A stretch of 64,000 nt of DNA, from NCBI GenBank assembly GCA_977020255.1, contig CDROCS010005781.1:1-64000 (forward strand), given 5' to 3'. Under the pieces are notes generated by a model that was not told the DNA's origin, did no database searches, and saw only the letters and a program-made list of their open reading frames with translations. Source of the stretch: Obrimoposthia wandeli. Its lineage: Eukaryota. Positions 3,676 through 64,000 of this stretch are shown piece by piece. Made by a program: the position numbers and the translations under genes. The number at the start of each line of letters is the position of its first letter. Positions within the stretch are counted from its first letter, which is position 1.

Positions 3676-5060
3676 TGATAAAAATAATAAAACTTTTTTT
3701 TCTGCTGATTTTATTTAGCATTGAAGCTATAAACATTTGCAGATGTTGATGGTGTGCGAGTATGGCAATCACCTAGTACTCGCTTGGTTTTTGATTTATC
3801 AAAACCTCACCAGCACAAGATATTCACCTTAGAAAATCCTTATCGATTAGTAATCGATCTAGGAGGCAATGCTCAATTTAAGCCCCGTATTGATAAAGTA
3901 GATCTTGCAAGTACGTTAGTGACGAAGTTGCGTACAGGAAGACAAAAAAATAAAGACTTGCGCTTGGTTTTTCAATTGCGCGCAGATGTTAACCCTAAAA
4001 GTTCAATACTCGCCCCGAATAAAATTTATCCACACCATCGTTTAGTTGTTGATCTTTTTGAGAAAAATCAGCAAACCATTGAGTCTGTGATTACTGTGAA
4101 AACCGTTGCCGATAAAGTGGCGCATAATAAACGAGACATCATCGTTGCTATTGACGCTGGGCATGGTGGCGAAGACCGGAGCAGTGGGTTATCGCCGGAC
4201 CAAAGAAAGTTGTTGTTTTAAAAATAGCAAGAAACTAGCCGCTTTGTTAAAGGCAGAACCTGGCTATAAGCCCTATTTAACCCGCACTGGTGATTATTAT
4301 ATTCCGCTACGTGACCGTACGCGTAAGGCCCGTGATGCTAATGCTGATTTGTTTATTTCAATTCATGCCGATGCTTTTAGAAACTCACAGGCTCATGGTA
4401 GTTCGGTATTTGTATTGTCCGAGCGAGGCGCGTCCAGCGAAGAATCACGTTATCTAGCGCAAAAAGAAAATGAAGCAGATCTTGTGGGTGGGGTTAGTCT
4501 CGATGACAAGGATGATCACGTTGCAATGACCTTATTGGATTTGTCCATGACCGCACGCGTGGCTCAAGTTTGGCTGTGGGGAAGATGATTTTTAAAACGA
4601 ATGGATAAAATTTCTCGTCTGCATAAAAGCATGTAGGCGAGGCGGCCTTTTATGGCATTGGAAAGCCTGATATCCCAGCACTGCTAATTGAAACGGGATT
4701 TATTTCTAATCCTGGCGAAGCTAAAAAATTAGCGACTTCTAGTTATCAAAAGAAAATGGCTCGCGAAATATTCTCTGGCTTAACAGGCTATTTCCATAAC
4801 GAACCACCCGAAACAAGCTACGTTGCTTGGAAGAAAAATAGCCATAAATCGACGGTTGCATCGGTGAAACCGATACAACAAAAAGATTCGAAAAAGAGCA
4901 CTGGAACACCACGATATACGATTAGGCGTGGTGATACTCTATCGGATATCGCGGCAAAGAATAGAACGACCGTCGCGAATATGCGTCGCGTACACGGCAT
5001 TACAAATAACAGTATTCGCTGGGCAGCGCATTGCTGCCCGCGAGTTAGGCTTATTCTCAA
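3672..5060 (+). pseudogene. amiB: N-acetylmuramoyl-L-alanine amidase with AMIN and LysM domains, split by frameshifts
   Basis: AMIN-like [41 protein letters not shown] and Lys[14 protein letters not shown], spread over ORFs 3754-4221, 4106-4588 and 4756-. The end coordinate is approximate. Confidence 0.85.
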
Positions 5061-5061
5061 T

Positions 5062-7057
5062 ATGAAAAGAATTCATTTATTATCACCGCGCCTAGCAAAC
5101 CAAATTGCGGCGGGTGAAGTGGTAGAACGACCTGCCAATATCATTAAAGAACTGGTTGAAAACTCGTTAGATGCAGGCTCTACTCGCATTGAAATAGATG
5201 TTGAGCAAGGGGGTATTAAGTTATTACGTATTCGTGATGATGGCCATGGTATTCCTAAAGACGATTTGCCTTTGGCGTTGAGCCGACACGCGACCAGTAA
5301 AATTAGTACGTTAGATGATTTAGAAGCCGTGAGTAGCCTAGGGTTTCGGGGTGAAGCGTTAGCATCGATCAGTTCGGTTTCTCGTTTAACGATGACTTCT
5401 GCGACGGCGCCAGAAATATCTGGGCGAATCTGGAAAGCGGCAATGACAACGAAAGTGGGCAAGCTTGGCAAGTCGAAGTAGAAGGTCGTGAGATGGCTGC
5501 GAGTATTAAACCTGCGGCTCATCCCAAAGGCACTACGCTAGAAGTGCGTGACTTATTTTTTAATACCCCCGCTCGAAGAAAATTTTTACGCACCGAAAAA
5601 ACTGAATTCAATCACGTAGATGAATATTTTAAACGCTTAGCATTAAGCCGTTATGACGTTGCCTTTAGCCTGCGTCATAATCAAAAAGTAATTCATTCAC
5701 TGCGTCCGGCCATTCGAAACATTGATAAAGAAAAACGGGTTGCTGCGTTACTCGGTGCTAAATTTATTGATGCCGCTTTGCATATTGATGCCGAAGCCGC
5801 GGGTCTAGGCTTAACTGGCTGGGTTGGTTTGCCGACGTTCTCCCGCAGTGCTGCAGACATGCACAATACTTCTTGTTAATGGCCGAGTTGTGCGAGATAG
5901 GTTAGTCGCCCATATGATTAAGCAAGCTTTTGGCCGGAGACGTCTTGTATCACGGTCGTCAGCCAGCGTTTGTGCTTTATCTCACCGTTGATCCTGCTTT
6001 GGTTGATGTAAACGTGCACCCGACGAAACACGAGGTGCGTTTTCGTGATGGCCGCTTGGTGCATGATTATTTATTCAGAACTTTGCATAAAGCATTAGCG
6101 GATGTTCGTCCTGATCATCAATCCGCGCCAACCATTTGCAAGGCTCAGGGATTTGAAGGATGGAGAGGCTGTAGGCTTCTGATTGACGAGTCCTGCTTTA
6201 ATGGCCAATAGTCAGCAGCAGGTTACGGGTATTCAAGCGGGTGAGTTTAGCGAGCAGACACGCATGAGTTTGCTTGCCTGGTAGAACTTATGACTGGGCA
6301 GCCACCGGGCCAAAGTCCAGCGGGTGTACAAGAGCATCTCAATGCTTATCAGGCGTTATCGCAGCCTTTGAATGTCGCCTCAAATGGTATGATGACAGAA
6401 GAGAGGGTTGATCCGGAAACCGGTGAAATTGTCACCGTATCGGTTGAACATAAACATCCTCAAGAATCCGATGTTCCGCCATTAGGTTTTGCTATTGCTC
6501 AGTTACACGGCATTTATATTTTATCTGAAAATGCTCACGGTTTAGTGGTAGTGGATATGCACGCCGCTCACGAACGTATTACTTACGAACGTTTAAAAAT
6601 TGCCGTCGATCACCAAAACGTGCAAAGCCAACCGTTGTTAGTACCGATCACCATCAGTGTTTCTGAAGGTGAAGCGGATGCTGCTGAGCAATATGCCGAT
6701 GAATTCGCCCGCTTTGGTGTGTTATTGCAACGAGCGGCCCCCGAGTCGATTATGATTCGCCAAATACCGGTGATTTTGCAGCAAGCCGAAACAGAGCGTT
6801 TGGTGACTGATATGCTTGCGGACTTGATGCAACATGGCAGCTCAGATCGCATTCAAGCACACCGTAATGAGATACTCGGCACCATGGCCTGTCACGGTAG
6901 TGTGCGTGCTAATCGCAAATTAACGTTGCCAGAAATGAATGGCTTGTTACGCGATATGGAAGATACAGAGCGCAGTGGCCAATGCAATCACGGTCGCCCG
7001 ACGTGGACTCAGATGAGTATGTCGGATCTAGATAAATTATTTTTGCGAGGCCGATAA
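5062..7057 (+). pseudogene. mutL: DNA mismatch repair protein MutL, split into at least 4 frames (probably sequencing errors)
   Basis: [74 protein letters not shown]. Confidence 0.92.
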
Positions 7058-8260: not shown

Positions 8261-8503
8261 ATGTCAAAAGGGCACTCTCTACAAGACCCTTACTTGAATG
8301 CACTACGTAAAGAGCGCATTCCTGTATCCATATTTTTGGTAAACGGTATCAAACTGCAAGGTCAGGTTGAATCGTTTGATCAGTTCGTTATTGTATTGAA
8401 AAATACAGTGAGTCAGATGGTTTATAAGCACGCGATTTCTACGGTAGTTCCTAGTCGTCCTGTTCGCTTGCAAGTTGAAACTCAAGAAGACGAAGCTGAA
8501 TAA
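8261..8503 (+). CDS. hfq: RNA chaperone Hfq (80 aa)
   Basis: [34 protein letters not shown]...[10 protein letters not shown]; SD GGAG upstream. Confidence 0.99.
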
Positions 8504-8619: not shown

Positions 8620-9942
8620 TTGTTTTTTGATCGCCCCGAAGCTGGCAGTAAAGCTAGCGACATCGCCATTCTAGTACATATCGATTTTCCGGAAGGGGAT
8701 AACCGCGAGGACCCTAACGAATTTAAAGAATTGGTATTATCTGCAGGCGGAAGCCCCGTTGAATTCATAACAGGTTCGCGTAAAGCGCCTGATCCAAAAA
8801 CCTTTGTCGGTAAAGGCAAGGTAGAAGAAATTAAAGCCATGGCGGAAGCTCATGAAGCAGATATCATTCTGTTTAATCATGCGTTAACCCCTAGCCAAGA
8901 ACGAAATCTTGAAGAAGCTTTAGAATTCCGAGTGCTCGACCGTACCGGTCTTATCCTTGACATTTTCGCTCTACGCGCACGTACCCACGAAGGTAAATTA
9001 CAAGTTGAACTGGCGCAATTACAGCATCAGGCAACGCGACTTATTCGTGGTTGGACTCACTTAGAGCGTCAACAGGGTGGTATTGGTTCTCGTGGAGCCG
9101 GTGAATCTCAGTTAGAAACTGATAGACGCTTAGTAGCAACCCGAGAAACATTGATTCGTAGTCGATTAAAAAAAGTTCGCGCGCAGCGTGAGCAAGGTCG
9201 CCGCAAGCGTAAGCGTTCAGAGATTCCGACAATCGCGTTAGTGGGCTATACCAACGCCGGCAAATCAACATTATTTAATGCCTTAACTAAAGCTAATGTG
9301 TATGCCGCTGATAAATTATTCGCGACCCTCGACCCAACCTTACGTCGTTTGAAGGTAATGGATGTTGGTGAGGTGATATTGGCCGATACCGTAGGCTTTA
9401 TTCGTCACTTACCACACAAATTAGTAGAAGCGTTTCGTGCTACCTTGCAAGAAACTACCGAAGCGAATTTATTACTGCATGTGATTGATAGCGCAACAGA
9501 TGAGCGCGATCACAATATTCAGCAAGTAGACAACGTGCTGGCTGAAATCGAGGCTGATCAAGTTCCACAATTAAAAGTCTACAATAAAATAGATTTATTG
9601 GAGACTGCTGAACCAAGAATTGACCGTGACGAACATGGTACACCGGTTGCTGTCTGGCTATCGGCTCAGGCAAAAGTAGGGTTTGAATTATTAACCCAAG
9701 CAATCTCCGAGCTAGTAGCGGAAGAGCTTTTTCAGGAAACGATTCAACTAACCCCTGCAGACTCTAGGCTTAGAGCATTGCTTTTTGAACAGGCAGCGGT
9801 TGCTGAAGAAACTTATGCAGACAATGGTGATAATATATTACGCTTACGTTTGCAGCTTGATGACTTCAAAAAGATATTAGCAAAAGCGGGTACTAGAGCA
9901 GATCGTTTTATTCCTGTTGTATTAGAACATTGGGAAAAATAG
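8620..9942 (+). CDS. hflX: Ribosome rescue GTPase HflX
   Basis: TTG start; ALVGYTNAGKST, LFATLDPT, DTVGFI, NKID; follows hfq. Confidence 0.97.
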   Translation: MFFDRPEAGSKASDIAILVHIDFPEGDNREDPNEFKELVLSAGGSPVEFITGSRKAPDPKTFVGKGKVEEIKAMAEAHEADIILFNHALTPSQERNLEEALEFRVLDRTGLILDIFALRARTHEGKLQVELAQLQHQATRLIRGWTHLERQQGGIGSRGAGESQLETDRRLVATRETLIRSRLKKVRAQREQGRRKRKRSEIPTIALVGYTNAGKSTLFNALTKANVYAADKLFATLDPTLRRLKVMDVGEVILADTVGFIRHLPHKLVEAFRATLQETTEANLLLHVIDSATDERDHNIQQVDNVLAEIEADQVPQLKVYNKIDLLETAEPRIDRDEHGTPVAVWLSAQAKVGFELLTQAISELVAEELFQETIQLTPADSRLRALLFEQAAVAEETYADNGDNILRLRLQLDDFKKILAKAGTRADRFIPVVLEHWEK

Positions 9943-10072
9943 CTTAGATACAGCTTTGAAAAAGCAAAGATAAGTAAAGTCGATGATTGTGATATGAATT
10001 ACACAATCAATCTTCTATTATTTGCTTCAAATAATTTAAACGATATGCAACCCAGAGATAATGGAGTGATTT

Positions 10073-24849: not shown

Positions 24850-24972
24850 GCCCTCATCCCAGGGGGTGGCGAGTTAGATTGATTCTTGATAAAAGAGTTT
24901 TGTTCTAATAAGCCTGAGATGCAATGCAAACTCCTTGAACCTGATCCGGTTAATACCGGCGTAGGAATGGGC
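24850..24972 (+). ncRNA. TPP (THI-box) riboswitch
   Basis: GGGGGTG...CTGAGA...CTTGAACCTGATCCGGTTAATACCGGCGTAGGAA. A downstream hairpin (about 25028-25056) can sequester the SD (GAGG) of the receptor gene. Confidence 0.93.
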
Positions 24973-25061
24973 AGTTGAATTGATATTTTGTTATTCCATC
25001 AACACTACACGCTTGCTACGCTCGACCGGGTCTTCTCTTATTTTTGAGGCAGACCTAACTA

Positions 25062-61842: not shown

Positions 61843-63237
61843 TTAAGACTCTGGATTACGAGAGCGTTGGCGACCATTCGGTGTGCCACGGTCAGTACGA
61901 CGCGGGCGACGCTTCTTAGTATGGCGTTCTTCAGGCTTACGGTTGGCGGCAACTTCTTTGTATTCATCGGTTTCTTGATACTGAGTCCACCAATTGCCTA
62001 AACCTTTCAGGTTTTCACCACACTGTTCACGCAACAGGACAAAATCATAGGCCGCGCGGAAACGATTACTTTCAGCAGCTTCAGCGGCTTTCTTGCCTCT
62101 TTTTCGTTCTAGGCGAGACTGCATATCCCAAATTTCTTTCATCGGAATCGTAAAACGCTTAGGAATAGAAGTGCGCTTCAGCTGTTGCTCGATGACTCGG
62201 CTAGCGGCTTTATGCAAGGCTGGCTGAGGAGGAATTCCTTGCTCTAAAAATTCCGCTTGGACTCTTTGTAGAGATGGCCATAGTAAAGCCGCAAAGAAAT
62301 AATAAGGCGTTACTGACTTGCCTGATTGAATACGCGTATCGGTATTAATCATGGTCTGTTCAACAAAGCGTGCAGCAAATTCATCGTCTGCCACGCACTG
62401 CTCCGTTAACGGAAACAACTCACCAAATAGCTTATATTCACGCAATAAACGGTAGGTTACTAGAGCATTACCGGATAAAAACAGCTTCAAAACTTCTTCA
62501 AATAAGCGCGGCGCAGGGATCTGCTCCATTAGCGGCGCCATCATTTCAATCGGAGCTTTAGTCTTGTGCTCTATTTCAAAATCCAATTTACCCGCAAAGC
62601 GAATAGCTCGCAGCATGCGCACAGGATCTTCGCGGTAGCGGGTCTCAGGATCACCCATCAAACGGATTAATTTATCTTGAGCATCTTGATAGCCACCGGC
62701 ATAAGACAGCACAGTAAAATCATCAACGGCGTAATACATAGCATTAATGGTGAAATCACGGCGCATAGCATCATCATCGATGTTGCCATAGACGTTATCA
62801 CGTAAAATCATGCCGCTATCGCCAGTTTTAGCCTGGTTACTATTGTGCTCTTCTTTCGGAGACGTTCTGAATGTGGCGACTTCAATCACTTCGCGGCCAA
62901 ACAAAACATGAACCAATTTAAAGCGACGGCCAATTAAGCGAGAGTTGCGAAACAGTTGATTGACTTGTTCTGGAGTTGCACTCGTCGCCACGTCAAAATC
63001 TTTGGGGTGTGCGCCCAACATGGAATCGCGGACACAGCCGCCTACAAGATAGGCTTGATAGCCCGCGCTATTTAAACGATACAGGACTTTCAGTGCATTC
63101 TCGCTCAGCTGACGACGGCTAATGCCGTGCTCTTTGCGCTGAAGAATTTGCGGTTTGATCTCATTATCCGCGTTTTTAGCTTTGCGGCCCCCCATTAAAG
63201 AAGGGAAGAAGCGCGCTACAGTATTAACTATGGACAT
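61843..63237 (-). CDS. pcnB: Poly(A) polymerase I
   Basis: LVGGCVRD..LG..PKDFDVAT, IGRRF.LVHV, RRDFTINA, EDPVRMLRA, FRAAYDF..LR. Confidence 0.97.
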   Translation of the reverse strand: MSIVNTVARFFPSLMGGRKAKNADNEIKPQILQRKEHGISRRQLSENALKVLYRLNSAGYQAYLVGGCVRDSMLGAHPKDFDVATSATPEQVNQLFRNSRLIGRRFKLVHVLFGREVIEVATFRTSPKEEHNSNQAKTGDSGMILRDNVYGNIDDDAMRRDFTINAMYYAVDDFTVLSYAGGYQDAQDKLIRLMGDPETRYREDPVRMLRAIRFAGKLDFEIEHKTKAPIEMMAPLMEQIPAPRLFEEVLKLFLSGNALVTYRLLREYKLFGELFPLTEQCVADDEFAARFVEQTMINTDTRIQSGKSVTPYYFFAALLWPSLQRVQAEFLEQGIPPQPALHKAASRVIEQQLKRTSIPKRFTIPMKEIWDMQSRLERKRGKKAAEAAESNRFRAAYDFVLLREQCGENLKGLGNWWTQYQETDEYKEVAANRKPEERHTKKRRPRRTDRGTPNGRQRSRNPES

Positions 63238-63339
63238 CTATGGTTGCCTGAATTTTCGCGATTGCAGGGGAAAGGTACTTCAAAGAAGAACTTGCGCCTG
63301 TCGAGTATGATTATTGTTCGATATTAGTTAGTTAGCGAG

Positions 63340-63727
63340 TTTACATGATGGGTTGGCGCTTTCAAAGCACCTGTGGCTATAAAAGCCTTGCCTGTAAATA
63401 AAAGGGGGGTAATAAAGGAAGTAAAACTCAGGTTTGGCGATTGTTATTTTTATTATTGCCAAACCGAGATAAGTAAACCAACTGTTTTGAATACGCAGGA
63501 ACTAAAAGCTCCGTTATTATTCTTATTATATGTGTGCTAAGTGATGCTCACTTCGCACTCAAAACAACTGATTTTTCATTTTTCTATGCCTCTTTATTGT
63601 TTTTATTGTGAGACCACCTCTTCATGGGTGTTTTGATATTCATAAACGCGATTTTTATTTTTATTATTGCGTTTAACTTCAATCTTACGTTTTAGCTTTA
63701 TTATTTTTGTTAGTGCTTAACGTTATA
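63340..63727 (-). ncRNA. CrcZ-like Hfq/Crc-sequestering small RNA (3' end approximate)
   Basis: ORF-free; starts ~12 nt below a sigma54 promoter; five AANAANAA-rich loops; sits immediately upstream of pcnB-folK-panBCD-pgi, like Pseudomonas crcZ. Confidence 0.8.
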
Positions 63728-63737
63728 TTTAATATAT

Positions 63738-63754
63738 AGCCATAACCGTGCCAA
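63738..63754 (-). promoter_or_regulatory. Sigma54 (-24/-12) promoter
   Basis: Minus strand TTGGCACGGTTATGGCT, exact GG-N10-GC spacing. Confidence 0.88.
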
Positions 63755-63772
63755 CTTTATAAAACTCTTTAA

Positions 63773-63785
63773 AATCAATGGCTTG
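63773..63785 (+). promoter_or_regulatory. IHF binding site
   Basis: AATCAA-TGGC-TTG matches the consensus WATCAANNNNTTR, between the sigma54 core and the UAS. Confidence 0.75.
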
Positions 63786-63813
63786 AGTAATCTAGTGCTT
63801 TAGATGAACAACT

Positions 63814-63877
63814 TGTTACGCCAAAAGTGTTACCTGAAGTAATGTTCTCCCGTAACAAAAGTAACGATTAAGTAACA
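63814..63877. promoter_or_regulatory. Enhancer (UAS) with CbrB-type half-sites
   Basis: TGTTAC at 63814 and 63828; GTAACA at 63852 and 63872; GTAACG at 63861; about 87-150 nt upstream of the predicted TSS. Confidence 0.7.
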
Positions 63878-64000
63878 CTGTGTAAGTTTTTACCTAAAGT
63901 GAGCCACTTTAAGCCTTGATTGACGGATTTTGTAGTAAGTTTCTGAAGGTATAAAAGTCAGGTGCTGGTTGAGTGTTGGGTTTATTGGCGGCAATTTGGC

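Follow-up and report, generated by a model that had tools for sequence, protein, structure and literature searches.

A probable Hfq sponge RNA at the crcZ position of an Oleispira genome

RNAs of the CrcZ family are placed in Pseudomonas and Azotobacter by the literature that we found, and a study of the CbrB regulon stated CbrAB to be exclusive to the Pseudomonadaceae (PMC6296734). The CbrB subsites of P. putida were mapped as F (TGTTAC) and R (GTAACA), and IHF is required for both crcZ and crcY in this species (PMC6296734). Hfq of P. aeruginosa binds A-rich stretches of CrcZ through its distal face: a CrcZ fragment with three of them was shifted by Hfq into three bands, taken by the authors to mean that each stretch holds one hexamer, and the distal-face mutant Y25D of this protein fails to bind CrcZ (PMC4063720). 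Here we describe a locus in a 64,000-nucleotide (nt) stretch of DNA (positions 1 to 64,000 of contig CDROCS010005781.1, assembly GCA_977020255.1, filed under Obrimoposthia wandeli; hereafter the window), whose source bacterium we assign to Oleispira since its PcnB is 89-96% identical to the PcnB of Oleispira metagenome-assembled genomes (MAGs). We consider it likely, with a probability of roughly 80%, that the locus preceding pcnB is the crcZ-position gene of Oleispira, encoding a sigma-54 transcript of ~309 nt that acts as a protein sponge. The original prediction, made from the DNA letters alone, knew of no description of such an RNA in this lineage; the literature searched contains no report of it, nor any description of CrcZ or CbrAB regulation in Oceanospirillales genera (Oleispira, Thalassolituus, Bermanella).

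A structured, A-rich RNA upstream of pcnB

The A-rich motifs of the RNA are far denser than chance would give. The motif AANAANAA occurs 17 times (overlapping count) in the 309 nt, compared with 3.0±2.0 times in dinucleotide shuffles (0 of 2000 reach 17), and its mean over both strands of the window is 0.34 per 309-nt tile, with no tile outside the locus reaching 8. Similarly, 5 of the 19 (ARN)>=5 runs in the whole 64 kb (both strands) fall within the RNA. Read as triplets for the distal face of Hfq, the successive loops are (ARN)5, 6, 5, 5, and 6, with tract lengths of 15-18 nt, and nearly all of 14 orthologues retain these five tracts. In the consensus structure, none of the 76 motif nucleotides is paired, compared with 55% unpaired positions over the whole RNA.

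Alignment with 13 related loci holds from the promoter to just past stem-loop 5, after which conservation collapses. The RNAalifold consensus of this alignment contains 69 pairs, arranged as three hairpins with A-rich loops, a small extra hairpin, a helix of 21 base pairs (bp), and a terminal hairpin of 11 bp. Canonical pairs fill 98% of its cells, and 15 pairs are compensatory, compared with 2-4 after displacing the partners by 1 to 3 columns; of 500 shuffles of the columns, not one was as good. Enlarging the alignment to 23 distinct Oleispira-clade sequences, with metagenome contigs retrieved by means of an invariant 21-mer, gave 67 pairs, 16 of them compensatory. The RNA of the window itself has a minimum free energy of -69.9 kcal/mol (z -4.73 vs shuffles). 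Compensatory changes occur at all 7 pairs of the stem-loop 2 helix (alignment A5) and at 7 of the 11 pairs of stem-loop 5 (e.g., GGUUUGGC/GCCAAACC vs GGUUCGAC/GUCGAACC); the arms of the long helix are almost invariant among the 14 sequences. Across genera, 24 of the 27 pairs of the 5' module are compensatory in 20 matches (5-11 when slid; 0 of 500 shuffles as good), in an alignment that was fitted to the covariance model and is, therefore, biased towards the structure of that model. The RNA is a real, structured gene.

Several of these features had been listed in the original prediction. The five A-rich stretches are present where it placed them on the minus strand, the 7-bp stem UAAACGC/GCGUUUA is formed by 63675-63669 with 63649-63643 and the 8-bp stem GGUUUGGC/GCCAAACC by 63465-63458 with 63438-63431, and the 19-nt loops at 63668-63650 and 63457-63439 do differ at one base. 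Its description of the region as free of open reading frames (ORFs) also stands, since no ORF of >=60 amino acids (aa) was found on the minus strand at 63340-63727. The longest in the region, a 44-aa ORF with a TTG start (63328-63462), was rejected as it overlaps stem-loop 5 and for the remainder consists of spacer that aligns poorly among relatives. A 55-aa ORF on the plus strand that overlaps the locus was also rejected as coding, since beyond its overlap with the conserved RNA it is located in the same kind of poorly aligning spacer.

Contigs from four metatranscriptome runs (four studies), which were selected for holding the studied stretch, were aligned to 62800-64000 at 90% likeness, the search stretch reaching to 63900. 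They cover 63180-63763, with a summed depth of up to ~1500 at 63480-63720 and of ~20-200 between 63194 and 63480. No contigs were obtained over 63784-64000, and none over 62800-63086, within pcnB, except for one 33-nt piece in run X3. One contig terminates in an Illumina adapter, which places a cDNA end at 63715, or 12 nt into the RNA from its predicted start.

Promoter, regulators, and tandem copies

The interval of ~760 bases between pcnB and the end of the window contains, in minus-strand order, a hexamer cluster, an IHF-like site, a sigma-54 promoter, and the A-rich ~309 nt (Table 1). The sigma-54 site is the sole match to TGGCAC-N5-TKGCW in both strands of the 64 kb, where 0.22 would be expected; its TGGCACG is invariant in relatives and its -12 element near-invariant (TGGCT or TAGCT). 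This promoter, which the original prediction left unspelled, fits the start at ~63727 that was proposed there. The composite pattern TGTTAC..TGTTAC..GTAACA..GTAACA is unique in the window (0 expected from shuffles) and invariant in 11 relatives, and its hexamers are identical to the F and R subsites of P. putida. The IHF-like site is conserved in the Oleispira-clade alignment and also precedes the tandem units of other genera discussed below. An RpoN promoter, a CbrB site, and an IHF site, the combination characteristic of crcZ, are thus all found at the level of sequence. Just upstream of the CbrB-type hexamers there is a further conserved block, GTGGCTCACTTTAGG...CTTACA (63880-63920, minus strand), with several positions invariant in 11 relatives, which may be another protein-binding site.

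Table 1. Coordinates in the window of the features of the locus and of related genes.
Feature	Position	Strand	Basis or remarks
CbrB-type enhancer (candidate)	63814..63877	-	Sequence; 87-150 nt 5' of predicted start
Enhancer half-sites TGTTAC, GTTAC, TGTTAC, GTAACA, GTAACA	63877-63872, 63865-63861, 63857-63852, 63833-63828, 63819-63814	-	
IHF-like site CAAGCCATTGATT	63773..63785	-	Reverse complement of WATCAA-N4-TTR; between enhancer and promoter
Sigma-54 promoter TGGCACGgttaTGGCT	63738..63753	-	GG 63752-63751, GC 63740-63739 (TGGCACG-N4-TGGCT)
Probable sponge RNA, ~309 nt	63419..63727	-	5' end predicted from promoter; 3' end set after stem-loop 5 and U-rich tail, uncertainty ~10 nt
A-rich loop 1	63696..63713	-	(ARN)5 63711-63697; closed by GC/GC and outer ACGUU/AACGU stem; helices 1 and 2 covary
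Stem-loop 2	63643..63675	-	7-bp stem, 19-nt loop with perfect (ARN)6 63668-63651
Stem-loop 3	63588..63614	-	GUCUC/GAGGC, (ARN)5 63607-63593; preceded by small hairpin 63630-63615
21-bp long helix	63475..63574	-	Encloses two small hairpins and single-stranded site 4, (ARN)5 63527-63513
Stem-loop 5, likely terminator	63423..63468	-	11-bp stem, 19-nt loop with (ARN)6 63457-63440, then UUUU
Sigma-70-like promoter TTGAAA-16-TAAACT	63338..63365	-	Consensus scan and conserved block in relatives; probably pcnB's own promoter
pcnB (poly(A) polymerase)	61843..63237	-	TIGR01942, 523 bits; downstream neighbour as after crcZ
hfq (80 aa)	8261..8503	+	ORF; mutL-miaA-hfq-hflXKC cluster; presumed protein partner

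The gene order 3' of the RNA, pcnB, folK, panB, panC, panD, and pgi, was borne out by NCBIfam, as the original prediction had it. On the other side, where it proposed to look for cbrA and cbrB, genes resembling both are present in the relatives with 89-96% identical PcnB. In one of these (locus L003), pcnB is preceded by dksA, gluQ, a kinase of 990 aa with PAS, HisKA, and HATPase domains, and a protein of 460 aa that combines a receiver with a sigma-54 activator. Over 99% of its length, the kinase shares 56% identity with a Halopseudomonas protein named CbrA by NCBI, and it is 58-68% identical to proteins named CbrA in Bacterioplanes and Oceaniserpentilla; comparably close relatives occur in Thalassolituus, Bacterioplanes, Bermanella, Oceaniserpentilla, and Oceanobacter. 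Compared with Halopseudomonas CbrB, the activator shows 65% identity over its full length, and the two are almost the same at the C-terminal DNA-binding end. A large membrane PAS kinase is, therefore, followed by an NtrC-type activator with orthologue-level identity, as expected for CbrA and CbrB. The 25 best NCBIfam families listed for either protein include no CbrA- or CbrB-specific model, and no Pfam match was found in the N-terminal 620 residues of the kinase. The crcZ position, between cbrA-cbrB and pcnB, is in this way represented by pcnB in the window and by cbrA and cbrB in the Oleispira relatives.

The order sfsA-aminotransferase-dksA-gluQ-cbrA-cbrB-[gap]-pcnB-folK-panB is shared by Halopseudomonas, Bermanella, Bacterioplanes, Thalassolituus, Oceaniserpentilla, and a Gammaproteobacteria MAG; Oceanobacter has the same cbrA-cbrB-[gap]-pcnB order in a locus that ends within folK, which brings the total to 7 genera. 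The gap between cbrB and pcnB is 1.0-1.3 kb long and contains two units in the Oleispira relatives, Bermanella, Bacterioplanes, Thalassolituus, and Oceaniserpentilla. Each tandem unit comes with enhancer hexamers and A-rich clusters of its own; an IHF-like site and a GG-N10-GC promoter were likewise recognized in most of them, in some cases by eye or in separate scans only. The short copy carries 3-4 sites and a strong terminator, and the long copy 5-6 sites.

The short RNA is located between cbrB and the long RNA (L003:8870-9330, L044:9440-9810, L045:9330-9650, L046:9390-9650, and L047:9410-9720) and is preceded by enhancer hexamers and a GG-N10-GC promoter, to which most loci add an IHF-like site. 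With R1, a covariance model of the 5' three-hairpin module only, it scores 32-37 bits (L008, L044, and L047) or 23 bits (L003), and it therefore appears to be a paralogue of this 5' module. The short copy of the studied genome would be situated beyond base 64000, because the window ends ~250 nt upstream of the promoter of the long RNA.

Three further groups of loci illustrate the variation in this arrangement. The 2-kb cbrB-pcnB gap of Oceanobacter (L048:9323-11307) contains three sets of TGTTAC/GTAACA hexamers, each followed by A-rich clusters, and looks like a three-copy tandem array. Upstream of pcnB in Reinekea sp. G2M2-21 (L032:9440-9830) there is a CrcZ-like unit that comprises GTAACA/TGTTAC hexamers together with TAAGCTATTGATA, TTGGCACAGCATCTGCA, a GC-rich terminator, and five A-rich stretches. 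As no cbrAB is located directly upstream of this unit, the sponge RNA is apparently present in Reinekea too, its regulators being encoded elsewhere. The cbrAB/RNA gap at pcnB is absent from Njordibacter and other Oceanospirillaceae MAGs (L012-L026, ~9860-10000; e.g., L012, L013, L016, L018, and L019), and in the loci checked a 290-aa ORF at the gluQ position is situated ~60-145 nt from pcnB. Since gluQ abuts pcnB in these MAGs, the cbrAB-RNA system is not universal in the order.

The design itself is known, and the name CbrA is already attached to some of these kinases at NCBI; the tandem modular array is the more novel part. We tentatively propose, as something possible rather than probable, that marine Oceanospirillaceae, including the oil-degraders Oleispira and Thalassolituus, possess a lineage-specific tandem sponge array of 2-3 copies, built on the three-hairpin module and with a CbrB enhancer for each copy, in which graded titration of Hfq would set the timing of alkane use with respect to other substrates, maybe without Crc and with an F25 Hfq.

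Proposed mechanism and alternative explanations

The presumed partner of the RNA, the Hfq encoded in the window, has P. aeruginosa Hfq as its best solved match (E 3e-40), with 65 of the first 70 residues identical, and an 80-aa Hfq has been detected in the proteome of O. antarctica. Crc does not appear in the portions consulted of the protein tables that accompany the O. antarctica proteomics study. Upstream of hfq, amiB and mutL appear to be split among six consecutive ORFs, in various frames and with a single in-frame stop (3754-7057, plus strand). The domains AMIN, Amidase_3, and LysM, then HATPase_c_3, DNA_mis_repair, and MutL_C, are recognized over these fragments, and tsaE, miaA, hfq, and hflX are intact; the fragmentation represents either an assembly error or decay of a mismatch-repair gene.

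By analogy with the Pseudomonas system, we infer Hfq binding, dependence on CbrB and RpoN, and the physiological output of the RNA. Activation by CbrA/CbrB would act via the enhancer, IHF would bend the DNA, and RpoN-polymerase would initiate near 63727. The five single-stranded (ARN)5-6 tracts of 15-18 nt, presented on stable hairpins, could each occupy most, if not all, of the six pockets that the distal face of an Hfq hexamer offers, so that up to five hexamers might be sequestered per RNA. With Hfq (and Crc, if the genome has it) tied up in this way, translational repression of catabolic mRNAs would be lifted.

The computational checks proposed in the original prediction all turned out favourably, except those on Rfam CrcZ and on crc. 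Several observations weigh against this interpretation. In its one notable difference from P. aeruginosa Hfq, the Hfq of the window carries F25 in place of the distal-face Y25, although an aromatic ring is retained. No crc was identified in the window, as none of its 10 ORFs of 232-289 aa contains an Exo_endo_phos domain, and cbrAB was seen only in close relatives because the window stops before cbrB. The metatranscriptome contigs are unstranded; one of 139 nt reaches 63763, 36 nt 5' of the predicted start and beyond the promoter, and coverage continues at a lower level into pcnB, where one contig (63113-63715) takes in the first 125 nt of the gene. Read-through both into and out of the RNA is, therefore, possible; read-through from cbrB into crcZ is known in Azotobacter.

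The comparison with CrcZ itself also counts against the interpretation. The check with Infernal against the Rfam CrcZ model (RF01675), as suggested in the original prediction, failed: the studied RNA gives no match at the gathering threshold of 95 bits, and in E-value mode scores 16.0 bits (E 0.054) with a high composition bias of 12.5. Neither nhmmer nor R1 matched the true CrcZ of Halopseudomonas or of the Gammaproteobacteria MAG, so that common descent with CrcZ is not shown by sequence. De novo covariance modelling, also suggested there, did reach the RNAs of relatives, but not true CrcZ: R1 matches the long RNA of Bermanella (42 bits), the short RNAs of the Oleispira clade, Bermanella, and Oceaniserpentilla (32-37 bits), and the Bacterioplanes RNA, and nhmmer with a profile of the Oleispira RNA finds Bacterioplanes (E 3e-7) and Bermanella (E 2e-6). 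The RNAs of Bermanella and Bacterioplanes score equally weakly with Rfam CrcZ. Positive controls at the same position, in an 830-nt gap, score 116.8 bits (Halopseudomonas) and 146 bits (the Gammaproteobacteria MAG), and the crcZ of Halopseudomonas has the same TGTTAC...GTAACA layout as Oleispira and a TGGCAC-N5-TGCT promoter upstream. As Rfam does not recognize the RNA, kinship with CrcZ has to be argued from position, promoter, and motif. The sole gathering-level Rfam match in the window is a TPP riboswitch (RF00059) at 24852-24984 on the plus strand (65.1 bits vs a threshold of 54.3); two matches to eukaryotic snoRNAs in a permissive scan were discarded as chance.

Three other explanations of the locus were considered. 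The first is a base-pairing or dual-function RNA, in which near-invariant segments that are not A-rich pair with target mRNAs and the A-rich loops merely recruit Hfq. In 14 sequences no change is seen in the arms of the long helix or in the stretch GUUCCUGCGUAUUCAAAACAG, which also recur exactly in 22 metagenome contigs; pairing alone would require less conservation. However, the consensus fold pairs these invariant segments with one another, and typical pairing small RNAs use a 3' U-tail and the rim of Hfq, not five distal-face sites, which makes this explanation unlikely.

The second is that the transcript forms a cis-acting leader of the pcnB-folK-pan operon, with the sigma-54 promoter driving pcnB. 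It would account for the lower-depth coverage that starts at stem-loop 5 and reaches the beginning of pcnB, and for the short U-tail of stem-loop 5, which went uncalled in a simple terminator scan because its loop exceeds 8 nt. Against this, depth drops 5- to 50-fold after ~63480, and conservation collapses between stem-loop 5 and the separate sigma-70-like block, where relatives have insertions of variable length. Furthermore, the same arrangement in Pseudomonas holds an independent small RNA, and the upstream tandem copy has a strong terminator and hence cannot be a pcnB leader. We give this explanation little credence. That the region, with 29-34% G+C compared to ~45% in the flanking genes, is simply AT-rich DNA between genes, or what remains of a repeat, and lacks any function as RNA is contradicted by the compensatory changes, the invariant loops, the conserved promoter and enhancer, and the high depth in RNA libraries, and is highly improbable.

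Comparison with CrcZ and other sponge RNAs

The locus is filed here, accordingly, as encoding an RNA that probably works like CrcZ and occupies the crcZ locus, though unrecognizable as CrcZ by sequence. Besides Oleispira, no fewer than five further marine genera show the whole upstream half of the circuit, i.e., kinase, activator, enhancer with IHF site, sigma-54 promoter, putative sponge RNA, and Hfq, and the Rfam model is blind to this form. Annotation would leave the gene blank because Rfam CrcZ fails to recognize the RNA, and the diverged sequences could widen the CrcZ family model. The system also offers a testable handle on carbon-source ranking in hydrocarbon-degrading bacteria, which bears on oil-spill microbiology. 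Finally, its natural variants (tandem copies, modular sizes, and the F25 Hfq) lend themselves to asking how many Hfq sites a sponge needs.

With the CrcZ of Pseudomonas and Azotobacter, the RNA has in common the position between cbrB and pcnB and a sigma-54 promoter accompanied by IHF and CbrB TGTTAC/GTAACA subsites. It further resembles CrcZ in being a non-coding RNA of a few hundred nt with five to six unpaired AANAANAA/(ARN)n loop sites, of which the consensus fold of the Oleispira RNA presents five as (ARN)5-6 tracts. Homology in sequence or structure to a bona fide CrcZ, by contrast, was not detected with the models described above. The two also differ in length (~309 nt in Oleispira, 407 in CrcZ) and in the distance of the first motif from the -12 element (28 nt, compared with 13 in CrcZ), and the last Hfq site of the Oleispira RNA is located within the loop of the putative terminator. 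Oleispira, its host, is not one of the Pseudomonadaceae, the family to which CbrAB is restricted in the literature.

Additional A-rich sponges driven by CbrB and RpoN, which operate beside CrcZ, are known as CrcY (P. putida, P. stutzeri, and A. vinelandii) and CrcX (P. syringae), and the Oleispira relatives likewise have a second copy, and Oceanobacter a third. The arrangement is different, however, since crcY of A. vinelandii occupies a separate locus between two hypothetical genes, whereas the copies of the Oleispira type are placed head to tail in the cbrB-pcnB gap. The sponges CsrB, RsmY, and RsmZ operate on the same principle, i.e., many short protein-binding motifs in hairpin loops, expressed under the control of a two-component system, that titrate a translational repressor. 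They carry GGA motifs for CsrA/RsmA and depend on GacA/UvrY and sigma-70, whereas the Oleispira RNA has ARN repeats suited to Hfq's distal face and a sigma-54 promoter.

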